Below, one piece after another: positions 54,741-64,000 of a DNA stretch of 64,000 nucleotides. The number at the start of each line of letters is the position of its first letter. Position 1 is the stretch's first letter. Position numbers and translations under genes: made by a program. This DNA comes from Macrostomum hystrix (taxonomy: Eukaryota; Animalia; Platyhelminthes): NCBI GenBank assembly GCA_950097015.1, contig CATNEN010000005.1, positions 186,001-250,000 on the forward strand. The letters run 5' to 3'. Under the pieces are notes generated by a model, which saw only the letters and a program-made list of their open reading frames with translations, ran no database searches and was not told where the DNA came from.

Positions 54741-56815
54741 ATGGATCAAGGACAAGGAAACGTGGTAAGCCTTCACACAAAGTCAAATCACATTATATAT
54801 TAGAGAAATTTTTATCTATAATCAATAATTTTCATTATCAGGCCTACAACAATGGCTATGCTCACAACAATAATCGAGGCCGGCAAAGCTACAATGGCAA
54901 TTACCGCGGCAATGGACACAGAATGCAGCACCACAATGCGCATCACCAGCAACAGCAGCAGCAGCAACCGCAGCCAGTGACCTCAGTTCAAATGCCCAAT
55001 AATATGCCAGCCCAGGCATACAACGCCAATGCTGCTCAGGTGCAATGGAGTGGCTACTCGACACAATTAGCCGCAGGTGGAATGCCTGTGCCCTTAGTGG
55101 TGAGTCATATTTGTTAATTTTAATCAGCCTTGAAATCTTTATTTTGTCTTTCCCATTCGATAAGAAAGCGGTAACAGATATCAGATTAAACAATCGAATT
55201 TTTCAAACTTGCAGATGTGTGCTCCATTGCAACAGGTGCTATACTCTTAAGCTTAAGATATCTTGCTATTGATTTATACTATGTTCGTTGATTTTTTTAC
55301 TAATCGTTACTTTTGTATACTGTATGTGTTACTTTGTTGATGTCGTTTGTTTTAAATGCTTTCCAAAATGTCAAAAAGTAAATTAATTTTATGTTTACAC
55401 CATTCATTGTGTTGTTGATAAAATGCACATTGACGAGGAGAAAGCTATTGCGTGATAAGTGAATATCATATTTCGTTGTTTTTAATGTTGATTTTAAATC
55501 CTAGAAACATGTATATTATTGTCATCACAGAAACAAAAAATTTCTGTTCTGACCCTTGCTAAATTAGAAGTAATTATCTCAACTTATTTATCAAATTTGT
55601 GAAATTGCTCTAACATTCAACTTAAACTCCCCTGAACACAAGTGGAGTCACATAAATTCACAGGGGACTCAACTGAATACATAGGGACTCACCTGAAGAC
55701 ACGGGACTCACCTGAATACACGTGGACTCACCTGAATACACGGGGACTCGCCTGAATATACGGGGACTCACCTGAATACACGGGGACTCACCTGAAGACA
55801 CGGGGACTCGCCTGAATACATAGGGACTCACCTGAAGACACGGGACTCACCTGAATACACGTGGACTCACCTGAATACACGGGGACTCACCTAAATATAC
55901 GGGGACTCACCTGAATACACGTGGACTCACCTGAATACACGGGGACTCACCTGAATATACGGGGACTCACCTGAATACACGGGGACTCACCTGAAGACAC
56001 GGGACTCACCTGAATACACGTGGACTCACTTGAATACACGGGGACTCACCTGAATATACGGGGACTCACCTGAATACAAAGGGATTCACCTGAATACACG
56101 AGGACTCGCCTAAACAAACTCTAACTCACTTAAATACACCAGGGCTCGCTTACACACACAGGGACTTGCCCAATAATACACGGGCACTCACCTGAACACA
56201 TACGGACTTATATAATCATTGAAACATTGATATTGTTTGTCGGCTGTGATGATAAATGCATTCAGAATGTTTCAAGCATTGACGAGCAGAAACGCTACTG
56301 AGCCGCAACAATCACTATCACATTCTTCGGAGTATTTTGAATAAGCACAGCACAGAATGCATAAAGGTTGTAAATAATAATTCTATTGATTTTTCTAGAT
56401 GTGTGGTATCATTCTATCGTATTTTCTAAACTTTTGTTATACAATTTTTTAAAGCTGTACTTAAGTTTATAATGCATTTGTGCATAAATAAATCGTTCAA
56501 ACATTTTTTCTATCGCCACAGGCTCAATTCGGTGCGCACAGCTGGCAAACCGCGGGCCCTGGTGCGCCTATGCCCCATCAGGGTGTTGGACATTTCGCCG
56601 CTCCTTTAAGCCATCCGCCGATTTACTATCCTAATCCGCAAGCAAACCCGTATCTGCCCGTTATGAATCCCTATGGTCATCCAGTGTCTAATGTGTCTTA
56701 CGTGCAGTCAATGAATTCGGCTCATCCTCTGCTGCCGCCGCCTCCGTCTTCTCACCATCATCAGCAGCCGCCGCTTCAGCAGCCGCAGCAGCAGCAGCCT
56801 CGTTATCATCACAAT

Positions 56816-56846
<31 letters not shown>

Positions 56847-59800
56847 CGCAGCCGCAGCCACCGCCGCCGCAGCAGTCAGTCAGTCACACTACCAAGCGTT
56901 TAGTGATAGTTGATCCCAAGACAAACGAGGCCATTGATTTGCCTAATGCGAAGCCGGTACAGCCGCCGCCGCCGCCGCCGCCGCCGCAGCAGCAAACTGC
57001 CACGCAGCAGCAGCCAATTGTCCAGCAGCATCAGCAAGCCGGATCTAAAGACGAACAACAGCGCCACGTGCAGAAAAATTTATTAGCTCAGGTGCGTTCC
57101 GCTAAAGATGGCAAAGCTTTGCCCGTTGCGCCTGCTGGCAATGTGCAGCAGCAAGCATTGACCCAAAGCGATTCTACTGTTAAGGAGGAGCCGCCTGTTG
57201 TTGAACAGACTCAACAGCCAGAGTCCGTTGCTACTAGTGTTGAAGAAAATTCCAAGCTTGATAGCAATGAGCAGCAGCAGCAGCAGCAATCCAAGCCAAC
57301 TGACACTGCATCGTCATCATCAGGCGATTATCTGGTTCGTCCGGCTCCACAACCACTGCGTAGTCAGTCTCTTGACGCTGTCGGATTAACAATGCATCAC
57401 AGCCAGAGCCACGGTCAGCTCATGACGCTAGCTGAAGGCGGCGGCGGTGTCGCCGACAATCTCGGAGCTTCCGTTTCAGCGGCCTCGTCTAACAGTTCGG
57501 ATGCCGCCACAGCTGGGCCAGTTAAGAATGCGCCTAAATATGAGTTCAAACCTGAGAAGGGCGAGTCTGAAAAGACCACACTCGAACGGAAGAATAAATA
57601 TGATAGAGAGTTTTTGTTTAAATTGCAAGACTCACAATTGTCTACTCAACGGCCAAGCACCCTGCCTAGCGATATTCCTGAACTGTTGCGCAAAAGTGAA
57701 GTGGTAAGATCCTTACCGATTAATTAGTTTAGTATTTATTGATGAGTTCGCTTTTATAACTGGCAATGATGATAAGTGCTTTCGGAAAAAGTCAATTAGT
57801 AAATTTAATATTTATTAATTGTTAATTGACGAGCAGAAACGCTACTGAGCCATTAAAAGTAAAAAAAAAATTATTATATTTTCTAGTACAATTTTCTTAA
57901 AAATGAAAATAAGATTTTCACAATAGGCTGGGAAAGGTGGTCAGTGTCAGAGCGGTTAACGCGTTTGCCTCTCGCACAAAAGGTCCCTAGGCTCGATTCC
58001 GCGGCGAGGCCACATTCACTTGGGGCGCAGCCGCGAAGAGAAGGCTTCTGTCGTGCTTGTCGTGCAATTTACGCCCTCGAGGACTAACCTCCAAGGCACA
58101 GTGACATTGTACACTGCATGACGATGAAAAAGTCAGGGGACGATGCACACTCCTGTGTGAGCATGTGCTCACGAGTCAGCGAAATGGGCAGAATTGCCTC
58201 CTCGCTGTCTGCGGGTCTAGTGTCACCAAATAATGTGCCATTGCCCGCAACCCTCATGCAATTATTATTATTAATGGGCTGGGCTGTGAGTACTGACGTC
58301 CCCCAGCTAGCAATAAAGCGATGGTGTCCATTGATTTTGCTGACCTCTAAGCACCCATTGTTTTGTAATTTGTCAAAATTATCATTAAGATTATAATTAC
58401 TTGTACTTCTATACCTTTTATAATGATTTTTTAAACCCGCAGCCGCGTATTCAAGGCGGCATCAATTTTATGCCTCAGTACGTTGTGCCTAGTAATTCTG
58501 GCACGCCGAAAGACAAGAACAAGCCTGGCATGTTTGGCAGACAGCAGCAACAGCAGCAGCAGCAGCAGCAGCAGATTAGTCGCGGTAATAATTCTAGACA
58601 ACAACAGCATTATCAGCAGCCGAAGCAGATGGTGATTGAAGTCAGGAGTCGCGAGAAGGTCGACTTGCATCACACCGACAACGCCTATGTGCCAGGCTTT
58701 ATGCAAAAGAAATCGGACGATGGCGACAATAATAAACGCCAAGATACCGAGCGAAATATTCGATCTATTTTAAACAAGGTCACGCCGCAAAACTTTGAAT
58801 CCTGCTTTCAACAGCTGACTAGATGCGACATTGGCACAGAGGACGGATTAAAGTGCTGCGTTGATATCATCTTTGAAAAGGTAAGCCCGTTACGCGCAGG
58901 AAAGGACTAGGTATTTCAGAATCTGAAAGCATTTCGTGGCATGCCAAAGCAAATGATGATTGTTATCCCTGTCTTACACTAAATGTGTAGAAAAATTCAA
59001 CAAACAATGGTAACTTTTATTTCTGAGTGCTATGCTCGCCACGAGTGCTTGTAATTGATACAATGTACATTTCATTCAAGTCTAGGGGTTATTGATTCTC
59101 ATTGTCTGAAATACATCAGTCTGAGTGTTCTAGATGCTCATTGACTGAAGTACATCAGCCTGAGTGTTCTAGATGCTTAAACTGACTGAATTACATCAGC
59201 CTGAGTGTTCTAGATGCTTAAATTGACTGAAGTACATCAGCCTGAGTGTTTTAGATGCTTAAACTGACTGAAGTACATCAGCCTGAGTGTTCTAGATGCT
59301 TAAATTGACTGAAGTACATCAGCCTGAGTGTTCTAGATGCTTAAATTGACTGAAGTACATCAGCCTGAGTGTTCTAGATGCTCATTGACTGAAGTACATC
59401 GGCCTGAGTGTTCTAGATGCTCATTAAATTGACTGAAGTACATCAGCCTGAGTGTTCTAGATGCTCATTAAATTGACTGAGTAACTAAATAAATATCTAA
59501 ATTGCTTCATGGCAAACTAAGCAATGATGATTGTTATCCCTGTCTTACACAAAACTGTGTAGAAAATACTAAACAAAAATGGTAACTAATTTCTGAATGT
59601 TTCGCTTTGCCAGAAGACTAAATTTGGTTAAGAAAATTTTCTTTTCTAATTTTTATAATTAGCCGAAACGATACAAACAAATGTTTTATAATCATGTAAT
59701 TTATTTTTAGAAAAAGTTTATTAAAGCAGGTAAATTATAATTTTTACTATTCTAGCAATTTTTTCTTTTATATTCTCTTCTCTACTAAAATTAACGTGGG

Positions 59801-62502
59801 TTATTTCCTGGCCACGTGTTTAATTGCCAACACTCTAGACATTGTTAAACAGTGATGCTAGTGGTAATGGTAATGCCAATAATTTGTTTTATATCTATAA
59901 ACATTACAGGCCACAAGAGAGACTTCTTATTCGTCGGTGTTTGCCGAAATTTGTCGCAACTTAGCTTTCGTAAGTAATCAGTTTCTTATTATTGTAGTTC
60001 ATATATTCTTAATATATTTTGACTATGAACAGACTGGACTGAGATTGTCTCTCTATGCTTTGGGTCAGCTTGAAGCGTTTAATAACACGCAACAAATGCA
60101 TGCGTTTGCAAAACTATTTCAACCCCTAGTCCCGCCCCTATGCTCTCTCTCTCTGTATGTCTGTCTGTCTCTTTCTCTCTATTCCATATTTCCTCTCCGT
60201 TCCGCTTCTCTACAAACTAATTTCAAGCCTAAAACTGTGTATCCTGTTCAGTCTTTGCATTTCCACGCGTATAAATGTATGCATAAGGAATATTTCCAGC
60301 ATAAAAAAATACAGTCCAATGCGCGTATTCCATGTACTTATGCAATCAAACCAATGCACGCATTTAGCACGTGCGTCATGGTGACTTTCTATTAAGAAAA
60401 AATCCCCTATTCCCACCTTTCCACTGTCGGTTTTAGAAAAAGCTTAACAAATTTGGGGCTTTTGGTGTGATAAAAGTAGGACTACCAAGCCATTTCACCG
60501 CTCTTTATTACACCAAGAGGGGATTTCCCCCCCAGATTTTTTAAACAACGCCTGAATGCTACGCTCGTAACAGCGTTGGGTCTTGGGTGATGAATGATTG
60601 GTTGACAGGCTAAGCGATAGTGTCCTGTGGTTGAGCTGCGCCTCAGCTGAGCTGTTTTAGCTATTGAAAGTCCAGCAGTCCATCTAGATCAGGGGTAGAC
60701 AAACTTATTTGCTGGCGGGCCAAAGAGAGAACCTAAAAGACGACAGCGGGCCGCATTGACTGTATAAATATGAGATAGGGGAGAGATGAGACACGGGAGA
60801 GATGAGACATGGGAGAGATGAGACACGCGAGAGATGAGAAACGGGAGAGATGAGACACAGGAGAGAGAAGAGACGGGAGAGATGAGACACGGGAGAGATG
60901 AGACATGGGAGAGATTAGTCACGGGAGAGATGAGACACGGGAGAGATGAGACACGGGAGAGATTAGTCACGGGAGAGATGAGACACGGGAGAGATGAGAC
61001 ACGGGAGAGATTAGACACGGGAGAGATGAGACACGGGAGAGATTAGACACGGGATAGATTAGACACGGGAGAGATGAAACAGGACACTGTAGATGTCAGA
61101 AAGGGGAACGGGCCGGATTTGGGAGCTTCGAGGGCCGCATCGGGCCCGCGGGCCGGAGTTTGCCGACTCCTGATCTAGATAAAGGTAGGTGACCACCGAA
61201 GACGTAGATGATGCGGGTGACATTCGGGTGACATGCTGTTACATTTTTAAGGCCTGGCAAGGCTGCACTGAGGCGCAGTGCTAATTCGTGTATATTTTAA
61301 TATGAGAAAATTTGCAGGTCTAAATTAAAGTCTCCAGCCAGACTTCCCACCATTTTTTTGCTGACTACCTCCGATTTAATGCGTAGGCGTAGCTCTGGCT
61401 TAGCTCTAACACTCCCCTGTGTTATTCTATTCAAATAGGAGAGTAATAAAAGTATTAAATAGTGCAAGGCTCAGCAACATCCGGTCCGTTGCCCCGATTC
61501 AAAATTTACTCTCCCGTCTCATCTCTCTACTGTTTCATTTATTTCCTGTATCATCTCATAACTGTTTCATCTCATAACTGTCTCATCTCATAACTGTCTC
61601 ATCTCATAACTGTCTCATCTCATAACTGTCTCATCTCATAACTGTCTCATCTCATAACTGTCTCATCTCATAACTGTCTCATCTCATAACTGTCTCATCT
61701 CTCTTATTTACACTGTCTCGTCTCTCTACTGTGTCACCTCTCCACTGTCTTCTCTCCATTGTCTCGTCTCTCTACTGTCTCACCTCTCCACTGTCTTCTC
61801 TCCATTGTCTCGTCTCTCTACTGTCTCACCTCTCCACTGTCTTCTCTCCATTGTCTCGTCTCTCTACTGTCTCACCTCTCCACTGTCTTCTCTCCATTGT
61901 CTCGTCTCTCTACTGTCTCACCTCTCCACTGTCTTCTCTCCATTGTCTCGTCTCTCTACTGTCTAACCTCTCCACTGTCCTATCTTTTCTGTCCCATCTC
62001 TTCTCTATCTTATTTCTTCGCTGACTCATCTCTTCTCAGGTCTCATCATTCTTGTCTCATCTCTCTTAATGTAATCTATGGCATTTGTGTCTTCTGTCTC
62101 TCCGTGCTTAGTCAGTAATTTAGCCTAGCCCTAGTGTAATGAACTAGACGCTGTCATTTAAATGAACTTGATTGTGTACTGCATGAGTTATATACAAGAT
62201 ATAAAGTCACTATTATATTTGTAGTAATTATTTCTAATAATTACACTATATTTTATAATCTTTTAGCTCAAGGTGAACATTGACAAGTCAGGCTCCGGCA
62301 GCTTCATCACTCATCGATCGCTGCTATTAAAGAAGTGCCAGAATATGTTCGAGACGCCCCTACTAGACCAGATGAATGCCAAGGCTGAGCATTGGGACGA
62401 CATCATTGCCAAAGAAGAGAAAGAGGAGAAGAAGAAATCGCTTGAAGAGGAGAAAGAGGAGCAAGTTAAAAAAGTGAAGGATCAGTACTACGGTAATATT
62501 CG
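54741..62502 (+). CDS. EIF4G: Eukaryotic translation initiation factor 4G (partial; continues beyond last exon seen)
   Basis: Exons 54741-54764 (MDQGQGNV), 54842-55099, 56522-57703, 58443-58880, 59910-59969, 62267-62502. eIF4E-binding motif YxxxxLphi = YDREFLF. MIF4G start IRSILNKVTPQNFE...IIFEK|ATRETSYSSVFAEICRNL|...RSLLLKKCQNMFE...GNIR. Confidence 0.9.
55660..56110. repeat. 20-bp minisatellite GGGGACTCACCTGAATACAC
   Basis: About 22 units in an eIF4G intron. Confidence 0.93.
56241..56305 (+). ncRNA. Candidate box C/D snoRNA family 2, copy 1 (eIF4G intron), target unidentified
   Basis: Box C GTGATGA 56246-56252; C'-like TTGACGA; guide GCAGAAACGCTA; box D CTGA 56298-56301; terminal stem CGGCT/AGCCG. 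Confidence 0.65.
57760..57852 (+). ncRNA. Candidate box C/D snoRNA family 2, copy 2 (next eIF4G intron)
   Basis: GGCA-ATGATGA at ~57762-57772, and TTGACGAGCAGAAACGCTACTGAGCC identical to copy 1 (26 nt), with an unrelated AT-rich internal spacer. Confidence 0.65.
57933..58272 (+). mobile_element. Full-length tRNA(Val)-derived SINE, family 1
   Basis: Head CGCGTTTGCCTCTCGCACAAAAGGTCCCTAGGCTCGATTCCGCGGCG resembles tRNA-Val CACGTTCGCCTCACACGCGAAAGGTCCCCGGTTCGAAACCGGGCG. B-box-like GGCTCGATTCC at ~57990. Body shared with four other copies; (TTA)n tail; probable TSD AAT(A/G)GGCTGGG at 57922-57932 and 58273-58283. Confidence 0.8.
58947..59031 (+). ncRNA. Box C/D snoRNA, snR38/SNORD1-like, copy 1 (eIF4G intron)
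   Basis: Box C ATGATGA 58953-58959; guide GTTATCCCTGT 58962-58972, antisense to the conserved LSU rRNA sequence ACAGGGAUAAC; D' CTTA; box D CTGA 59023-59026; terminal stem AGCA/TGCT and outer GTGGC/GCCAC. Confidence 0.8.
59098..59480. repeat. 36-40-bp minisatellite TGACTGAAGTACATCAGCCTGAGTGTTCTAGATGCT
   Basis: About 9 units between the two snR38-like snoRNAs. Confidence 0.92.
59519..59601 (+). ncRNA. Box C/D snoRNA, snR38/SNORD1-like, copy 2 (same eIF4G intron)
   Basis: Box C ATGATGA 59524-59530; identical guide GTTATCCCTGT 59533-59543 plus CTTA; TGTGTAGA; TGGTAACT; box D CTGA 59593-59596; outer stem GGCAAA/TTTGCC. The spacers have diverged from copy 1 while the boxes and guides are conserved. 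Confidence 0.8.
60690..61172. mobile_element. hAT-type MITE containing a 16-bp minisatellite
   Basis: TIRs CAGGGGTAGACAAACT / AGTTTGCCGACTCCTG, subterminal GGCCCGCGGGCC, exact 8-bp TSD ATCTAGAT (60682-60689, 61173-61180). Confidence 0.88.
61515..62040. repeat. CT-rich minisatellites (16-bp TCTCATAACTGTCTCA and a ~39-bp unit)
   Basis: Tandem units. Confidence 0.88.
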
Positions 62503-62997: not shown

Positions 62998-64000
62998 ACT
63001 GTCTACTTGTCTACTACTAACTACAGTACACTGTCTACTTGTCTACTACAGTACACTGTCTTTTTGTCTACTACAGTACACTGTCTTCTTGTCTACTACA
63101 GTACACTGTCTACTTGTCTACTACAGTACACTGTCTACTTGTCTACTACTAACTACAGTACACTGTCTACTTGTCTACTACAGTACACTGTCTTCTTGTC
63201 TACTACAGTACACTGTCTACTTGTCAACTACAGTACACTGTCTACTTGTCTACTACAGTACACTGTCTACTTGTCTACTACAGTACACTGTCTTCTTGTC
63301 TACTACAGTACACTGTCTAGTTGTCTACTACAGTACACTGTCTACTTGTCTACTACAGTACACTGTCTACTTGTCTACTACAGTACACTGTCTTCTTGTC
63401 TACTACAGTACACTGTCTTCTTGTCTACTACAGTACACTGTCTACTTGTCTACTACAGTACACTGTCTACTTGTCTACTACTAACTACAGTACACTGTTT
63501 ACTTGTCTACTACAGTACACTGTCTTCTTGTCTACTACAGTACACTGTCTACTTGTCAACTACAGTACACTGTCTACTTGTCTACTACAGTACACTGTCT
63601 ACTTGTCTACTACAGTACACTGTCTTCTTGTCTACTACAGTACACTGTCTAGTTGTCTACTACAGTACACTGTCTACTTGTCTACTACAGTACACTGTCT
63701 TCTTGTCTACTACAGTACACTGTCTAGTTGTCTACTACAGTACACTGTCTACTTGTCTACTACAGTACACTGTCTACTTGTCTACTACAGTACACTGTCT
63801 AGTTGTCTACTACAGTACACTGTCTAGTTGTCTACTACAGTACACTGTCTACTTGTCTACTACAGTACACTGTCTACTTGTCTACTACAGTACACTGTCT
63901 TCTTGTCTACTACAGTACACTGTATAGTTGTCTACTACAGTACACTGTCTACTTGTCTACTACAGTACACTGTCTACTTGTCTACTACAGTACACTGTCT
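62998..64000. repeat. 25-bp minisatellite TACACTGTCTACTTGTCTACTACAG
   Basis: Runs to the end of the window. Confidence 0.96.

Follow-up and report, generated by a model that had tools for sequence, protein, structure and literature searches.

Small nucleolar RNAs (snoRNAs) of the box C/D class and the snR38 type, which comprise snR38 in yeast, SNORD1A/B/C (snR38A-C) in human, and AtsnoR38Y in plants, are intron-encoded, have a degenerate C' box after the D' box, and carry upstream of D' a guide with GUUAUCCCUGU that selects the middle G of ACAGGGAUAAC in large-subunit (LSU) rRNA. The equivalent G is assigned to the Rfam family snoR38 (RF00213) in plant, human, and yeast, and the family has been traced to the last eukaryotic common ancestor (PMC3511168); deletion of snR38 abolishes yeast Gm2815, as monitored by RiboMethSeq (PMC5027498). 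A second described system, extra base-pairing (van Nues et al. 2011, EMBO J; PMC3116282), concerns conserved blocks, often located in an unused second guide region, that are complementary to rRNA near the methylation site. The authors describe blocks of 4 to 11 bp that sometimes overlap the guide duplex by 1 to 2 nt, suggest that the additional pairing may enhance or regulate methylation (which, according to the title, is aided), and give snR75 and snR87/U16 as examples, with yeast snR38 named too; their 17 human cases include no snR38/SNORD1. Here, we report two look-alike box C/D snoRNA units at positions 58947-59601 (+) of a 64,000-nucleotide stretch of the genome of the flatworm Macrostomum hystrix (contig CATNEN010000005.1, positions 186,001 to 250,000; hereafter, the window). 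The units share the snR38-type features listed above and contain a second block, TGGTAAC, which we propose, with a probability of about 0.6, to work as accessory rRNA pairing of the extra base-pairing kind.

Each unit spans ~84 nt and is built in the same order: ATGATGA, 2 nt, GTTATCCCTGT, CTTA, a hairpin leading to TGTAGA, an A-rich spacer, (A)ATGGTAAC, a few nucleotides, and CTGA. Both copies have a box C, a box D, and a short terminal stem, and the antisense element of at least 10 nt ending at D or D' that is expected of a box C/D guide is present as 11 nt adjoining CTTA. The features of the two copies, read from the sequence, are as follows.

58948-59031, + strand: snoRNA copy 1, ~84 nt, with terminal stem AGCA (58948-58951) to TGCT (59028-59031)
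58953-58959, + strand: copy 1 box C, ATGATGA
58962-58972, + strand: copy 1 guide, GTTATCCCTGT, adjoining the D' box
58973-58976, + strand: copy 1 D' box, CTTA
58984-58991, + strand: copy 1 TGTGTAGA, with the C' box TGTAGA (58986-58991) within it
59008-59018, + strand: copy 1 putative accessory block, TGGTAACTTTT, 4 nt upstream of box D
59023-59026, + strand: copy 1 box D, CTGA
58935-59043, + strand: copy 1 external stem in the intron flanks, CGTGGC (58935-58940) with GCCACG (59038-59043)
59519-59602, + strand: snoRNA copy 2, ~84 nt, with terminal stem AAGCA (59519-59523) to TGTTT (59598-59602), including one G-U pair
59524-59530, + strand: copy 2 box C, ATGATGA
59533-59543, + strand: copy 2 guide, GTTATCCCTGT, adjoining the D' box
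59544-59547, + strand: copy 2 D' box, CTTA
59556-59563, + strand: copy 2 TGTGTAGA, with the C' box TGTAGA (59558-59563) within it
59580-59587, + strand: copy 2 putative accessory block, TGGTAACT, 5 nt upstream of box D
59593-59596, + strand: copy 2 box D, CTGA
59510-59612, + strand: copy 2 external stem in the intron flanks, TGGCAAA (59510-59516) with TTTGCCA (59606-59612)

A pairwise alignment gave 81% identity over 137 aligned columns, the differences lying in spacers and flanks. As an earlier interpretation made from the letters alone (hereafter, the sequence-only reading) had noted, box C, the guide, CTTA, TGTGTAGA, the second block, and box D are kept in both copies while the spacers have diverged. 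Its claim of a second conserved block holds for the shared TGGTAAC and has to be narrowed for the rest, as TGGTAACTTTT is complete in copy 1 only and copy 2 has TGGTAACT followed by AATTT. The alignment places a 2-nt indel just 3' of TGGTAAC, a deletion in copy 2 that brings the block nearer to box D. In the predicted fold of copy 1, TGTGTAGA also contains the 3' strand of a D'/C' hairpin (UACAC/GUGUA). Folds that include the flanks are more stable than those of shuffled sequences (z = -4.1 for copy 1 and z = -2.6 for copy 2), and GTTATCCCTGT occurs twice in the 64-kb window, once per copy. The two units are very probably genuine snR38-type snoRNA genes.

The guide GTTATCCCTGT is complementary to ACAGGGAUAAC, a stretch present in both human and yeast LSU rRNA, and the predicted duplex has 11 bp and -18.1 kcal/mol. 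According to the +5 rule, the base that counts as fifth upstream of D', which is the C at 58968 in copy 1, lies opposite the middle G of ACAGGGAUAAC. For the numbering of this G we used yeast positions 2791 and 2793, which we take to be the known Gm2791 and Gm2793. Among the three Gs of the target, numbering the middle one 2815 is the sole choice that also puts a G at both of these positions in the yeast sequence (PMC8527467). The guide is thereby predicted to select the site of yeast Gm2815 and human Gm4362, and by target the window RNAs are snR38/SNORD1 equivalents, in agreement with the type that the sequence-only reading had assigned to them. Since no rDNA was found in a search of the window, a scan of viral contigs, and a scan of the retrieved loci, the rRNA sequence was taken from papers: human 28S (PMC12477938) and yeast 25S (PMC8527467) both read ...CAGAAAAGUUACCACAGGGAUAACUGGC..., and AAAAGUUACCACAGGGAUAAC is identical in the two.

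We then looked into the Rfam classification of the two copies. When the whole window was compared with Rfam at the gathering thresholds, no matches were obtained, and the snoRNA matches, found in E-value mode, were all sub-threshold. The top ones were snoR38, with 24.6 bits for copy 1 (over 58946-59033) and 23.6 bits for copy 2, and the Tetrahymena family TtnuCD17 (RF02293), level with it at 24.1 bits on copy 2 and 22.9 bits on the other copy; both families have the same guide. The gathering thresholds are 45 bits for snoR38 and 75 bits for TtnuCD17. The scan that the sequence-only reading had called for therefore names snoR38 and TtnuCD17 as the best families, at scores under the curated thresholds. 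The low snoR38 score is mainly due to the loss of a long spacer: box C and the guide are only 2 nt apart in the window copies versus ~19 in the Rfam snoR38 consensus. The window copies also differ from the family in their guide (11 versus 13 bp), their D' box (CUUA versus CUGA), the UGGUAAC block, which is not visible in the Rfam consensus, the presence of two copies in one intron, and a score of about half the gathering threshold. They resemble TtnuCD17, a short C/D snoRNA with AUGAUGAUU, a few bases, GUUAUCCCUGUC, a noncanonical D' box, and GGUAA 4 nt upstream of box D; TtnuCD17 is from a ciliate, its rRNA complement is only 5 nt long (GGUAA), and the window copies stay far below its gathering score.

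The evidence for a role of the second block comes from its complementarity to rRNA and from its recurrence in relatives. In copy 1, the 11 nt of TGGTAACTTTT are the perfect complement of rRNA AAAAGUUACCA (duplex of -13.4 kcal/mol), and in copy 2, the 8 nt of TGGTAACT are the perfect complement of rRNA AGUUACCA (-10.6 kcal/mol). The proposal that the block is antisense to the rRNA directly 5' of the primary target is borne out on the human and yeast LSU sequences: the rRNA stretch paired by the block extends as far as the first nucleotide of the primary target, so that the two pairings overlap by 1 nt, a shared A. In composition-preserving shuffles of the D'-to-D region, the chance of a perfect complement to the 21 nt 5' of the target was 6e-5 for 11 nt and 2.6e-3 for 8 nt. 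Guide and block together span 21 nt of contiguous rRNA in copy 1 and 18 nt in copy 2. The clamp of about 21 contiguous rRNA nucleotides put forward earlier is thus found in copy 1, where it fits extra base-pairing (PMC3116282); it comes to only 18 nt in copy 2, and the idea is not new in kind.

The block is out of methylation register. Counting five bases upstream from box D leads, in copy 1, to a base paired with the initial A of AAAAG, which is the outermost position of the duplex, and the ATTT between this base and box D is mismatched with rRNA CCAG; in copy 2, the same count gives an A opposite an A, a mismatch, and the 2-nt indel shifts the register between the copies. No duplex of about 9 bp or more spans the fifth base from box D in a conserved register. 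The window copies therefore resemble the extra base-pairing system in having an rRNA complement in an unused second guide region, directly flanking the methylation duplex with a 1-nt overlap and outside the methylation register. They differ from the snoRNAs of van Nues et al. in that the effect on methylation is here a predicted one (PMC3116282).

To follow the block beyond the window, we scanned metagenome contigs for TGATGA, 0 to 30 bases, and GTTATCCCTGTCT(G/T)A, which returned at least 120 loci. From the matches listed, we retained 107 nonredundant snoR38-type snoRNAs, to which all counts below refer. The C' boxes of these relatives have the form TG..GA (TGTGGA, TGCTGA, TGTTGA, TGTAGA). 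The D' box is CTTA in 51/107 and CTGA in 56/107, these being the only two forms that the pattern allowed, so that CTTA, first taken as a noncanonical oddity of the window copies, turns out to be common in the family. Several of the loci reach the snoR38 threshold, among them two that have short spacers like those of the window copies and carry the block: L053 (57.1 bits) has TGGTAAC adjoining box D and L043 (53.7 bits) has TGGTAA.

The block is conserved in part of the related snoRNAs: TGGTA occurs within 18 nt of box D in 13/107 relatives, compared with 1.7 on average and at most 7 over 1,000 shuffles, in a test of G-containing cores near box D whose words were picked after the data had been seen. 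Five control pentamers gave 0 to 6 cases each near box D, and the top one, ATGGT (6 cases), overlaps TGGTA itself. The carriers are otherwise dissimilar in sequence, and the block is confined to a subset of the family. It is present in 13/35 relatives with an 11- to 12-bp guide versus 3/72 with a 13-bp guide (Fisher P = 2e-5). This distribution suggests that the block may compensate for a short primary guide.

Individual relatives give further detail. L053 contains two diverged paralogs, both with ATGGTA. In L051, L055, and L063, the hexamer GUGGUA, antisense to rRNA UACCAC, forms the six-base loop of a four-pair stem that covaries among the three (GCCA/UGGC, GCGA/UCGC, and ACGA/UCGU, respectively). 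L036 and L088 have GTAACTTTTC, complementary over ten bases to rRNA GAAAAGUUAC, and an Entamoeba homologue has TGTTAACT. Across the relatives, the block lies anywhere from 1 to 10 nt away from box D, and this spacing also differs between the window copies.

Other snoR38-type lineages, with a long spacer and a 13-bp guide and some of them fungal-looking, have different conserved blocks adjoining box D. These lineages form three sets (L009, L010, L017, L021, L039, L040, L078, L108, L120, and others; L001, L002, L011, L015, L019, L050, and L114; L006, L045, L046, L085, L101, and L117), across which the blocks are TATTCACACT, ATTAGACT, and TCACTACCT. They look like true second guides for other targets, and the second-guide slot of the snoR38-type RNA seems to be used differently by lineage. 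In L043 (minus strand, Rfam match at 699-780), which has TGGTAA near box D, a GGATAAC element is a sense copy of part of the rRNA target and can form 7 bp with the RNA's own guide, which may make it a guide-masking helix. On the metagenome contig L003, positions 1 to 1170 contain a dense cluster of six snoRNAs that exceed their Rfam thresholds (Z157/R69, snoR80, snoR38, snoR20a, U31b, and SNORD14), packed into 1.2 kb in a plant-type polycistronic arrangement.

We then examined the genomic setting of the two copies. Contigs of 3.3 kb from two public runs, evidently transcripts, were compared with 58401-59980; they join the exon ending at 58880 to 59910 and skip 1,029 nt with GT..AG ends. Both snoRNA units, as well as a tandem array between them, therefore lie in one spliced intron, in sense orientation.

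58442-58880, + strand: upstream exon, the end of which reads ...DIIFEK
58881-59909, + strand: host intron of an eIF4G-like gene, 1,029 nt, GT..AG, defined by the transcript contigs and containing both snoRNA copies and the tandem array
59101-59480, no strand assigned: tandem array between the copies, 41-nt unit repeated 9.2 times with 92% matches, identified by repeat finding, with a unit that occurs nowhere else in the window
59910-59969, + strand: downstream exon, which reads ATRETSYSSVFAEICRNLAF

The exon ending in DIIFEK begins a MIF4G domain, according to a weak Pfam match, and a large-exon open reading frame (56570-57727, +) encodes YDREFLFKLQ, which we take to be an eIF4E-binding motif. 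A protein homologue search with the single exon adjoining the intron as the query gave no match. The 5' splice site lies 67 nt away from the start of copy 1, and 307 nt separate the end of copy 2 from the 3' splice site, unlike the distance of ~70 nt to the 3' splice site at which splicing-coupled assembly is favored in mammals. Two snoRNAs in one animal intron are less usual than one.

Intronic box C/D snoRNAs are reportedly processed with the aid of external stems, as Darzacq and Kiss (2000), Hirose and Steitz (2001), and Hirose et al. (2003) are said to have described. Like such snoRNAs, each window copy is bracketed by complementary intron segments of 6 to 7 bp outside its short terminal stem, to which we ascribe a predicted role. 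The external stems of both copies are present in the minimum-free-energy and centroid folds and have a common TGGC/GCCA core, extended on opposite sides in the two copies.

We propose that the locus encodes two paralogous intronic snoRNAs of the ancient snR38/SNORD1 lineage, both of which would be released from the single eIF4G intron, probably aided by the flanking external stems. The 11-nt guide upstream of D' (CUUA) would direct fibrillarin to the central G of ACAGGGAUAAC, which belongs to the peptidyl-transferase region of the LSU rRNA, and UGGUAAC(U), although in the usual slot of a box-D guide, would guide no second methylation. It would instead pair with the rRNA directly 5' of the target (AGUUACCA, or AAAAGUUACCA in copy 1), widen the snoRNA-rRNA contact to 18 to 21 near-contiguous nucleotides, and steady the unusually short primary duplex, which may in turn stimulate methylation.

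Several observations weigh against this interpretation. The host 28S sequence is deduced from the human/yeast identity, and neither copy is a member of Rfam snoR38 by score. The transcript contigs cover the exons and not the snoRNAs, although, as assemblies of apparent mRNA libraries, they are uninformative on small RNAs. About 85% of the relatives are without the block, as is the chicken homologue Ggn20, and the Rfam snoR38 consensus shows no conserved block at this place; vertebrates may lack it. When we scored the longest perfect complement anywhere in the 21-nt flank, at least 6 nt was reached in 17 relatives versus 11.8 expected, which is not significant because A/T-rich words (ACTTT, TTTTC) match by chance, and the core test described above replaced this whole-flank test. 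The P values overstate the significance, given that the relatives lack phylogenetic independence.

The explanation that best survives next to accessory pairing, although rather unlikely, is that the block has no function. After a young tandem duplication, leftover identity would match rRNA by chance, and one or both copies could be decaying, unexpressed pseudo-snoRNAs. It agrees with the 81% identity of the copies, with contigs that cover exons only, and with the many family members devoid of the block. Moreover, that two paralogs share an identical block counts for little in isolation, because we estimate that a 9-base identical run in a spacer of ~70% identity is not rare; stronger support comes from the distant relatives. 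There, TGGTA stands at the same place in otherwise dissimilar RNAs (13 cases versus 1.7 expected), including the independent paralog pair on L053, and an exact 11-nt complement abutting the primary target is itself very unlikely to arise by chance. Contrary to what would be expected of decaying copies, both units keep every box, the terminal stems, and separately maintained external stems.

The block could also be kept for the structure of the snoRNA itself. GGUAAC can pair with GUUAUC of the guide, which would close the RNA or mask the guide until the pre-rRNA is met, and the match to rRNA would be a by-product of the near-palindrome GUUA/UAAC. A GGUAAC/GUUAUC helix does appear in the minimum-free-energy and centroid folds of both copies, a further point against accessory pairing since part of the conservation could serve internal structure; conserved blocks that support secondary structure are described for some snoRNAs by van Nues et al. 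(PMC3116282), and GGATAAC of L043 pairs with its own guide. The internal helix is weak (-6.3 and -5.2 kcal/mol), however, compared with the block on rRNA (-13.4 and -10.6 kcal/mol), and what the relatives conserve is a core, (G/T)TGGTA, that is complementary to UACCA(C) of the rRNA, not the guide-pairing part. Many relatives have GTGGTAT, in which the UAAC required for the internal helix is lost while 6 Watson-Crick pairs to rRNA are kept. Counted over the carriers, Watson-Crick pairing amounts to 5 to 10 bp with rRNA versus mostly 3 to 5 bp with their own guide region, the exceptions being L041a, which ties at 5 bp, and L043 and L052, with internal pairings of 6 to 7 bp from other bases. In addition, three relatives display the hexamer in a hairpin loop. 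We consider a purely internal role unlikely and rank it lower than accessory pairing.

To our knowledge, neither the yeast interval from Gm2793 to Gm2815 nor the corresponding human stretch contains any other methylation. That TGGTAAC is a true box-D guide directing a second 2'-O-methylation in AAAAGUUACCA besides that of the D'-guided G, an option that the sequence-only reading had left standing, is very improbable: the block sits in the D-guide position, 4 to 5 nt upstream of box D, adjoins box D in some relatives (TGGTAAC followed by CTGA in L053, TGGTAA followed by CTGA in L077), and double-guide C/D snoRNAs are common, but the fifth base falls at the edge of the duplex in copy 1 and on a mismatch in copy 2, the distance of 1 to 10 nt among relatives means that no single nucleotide is selected, and such blocks lie outside the methylation register, with one exception, according to van Nues et al. 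(PMC3116282).

The remainder of the eIF4G-like gene contains other candidate snoRNAs and many repeats. Each 41-nt unit of the array between the two copies contains CCTGAGTG, a near-match to TCTGAGTG of copy 1 (box D and 3' flank), and the array may have grown from the junction of the snoRNA duplication. A second duplicated box C/D candidate is found at 56241-56303 and 57761-57853 (+), in the introns on either side of the large eIF4G exon; its two members have (A/G)TGATGA and a common TTGACGAGCAGAAACGCTA directly upstream of CTGA, and their top Rfam match is only snoR113, at 22.8 bits. If this candidate pair is counted, three consecutive introns of the gene would harbor a minimum of four C/D snoRNAs. 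Tandem repeats are generally abundant in the window, and short arrays fill the gene's downstream introns (one with a 16-nt unit at 60770-61000), with longer open reading frame-like repeats at 61731-62118 and 63007-63927. At 56764-56888 (-), sub-threshold Rfam matches to isrG and several microRNA families fall on a CAG/CAA-rich stretch of the large exon that encodes polyglutamine, and we discarded them as low-complexity artefacts.

A broader version of the accessory-pairing proposal is that in a subset of eukaryotes (flatworm, ciliates, and uncultured lineages) the snR38-type small nucleolar ribonucleoprotein (snoRNP) traded guide length for a second contact that also acts as a transient folding clamp. 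We regard it as speculative and improbable. If it were true, the snoRNP would grip ~20 contiguous nucleotides and keep this strand of the peptidyl-transferase center unpaired during assembly of the large subunit, and the inverse relation between guide length and the presence of the block would be an evolutionary trace of the trade.

With accessory pairing as the preferred reading, the locus exemplifies a published mechanism in which snR38 of yeasts already figures, which makes it a sound but ordinary find with a modest broader point. Through this locus, a flatworm genome gains two unannotated members of a snoRNA family that is among the oldest, and the locus indicates that the Rfam snoR38 model misses compact versions of this family. 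The shared target site predicts a conserved 2'-O-methyl-G at the catalytic center of the M. hystrix ribosome. Helper pairing, described mainly in yeasts and for other human snoRNAs, would also occur in snR38-type snoRNAs of distant eukaryotes, preferentially with a short guide, in keeping with extra pairing as a compensation for weak guides. The two copies would offer a simple test case: an 11-bp guide that either has a helper of 8 to 11 nt or lacks it.

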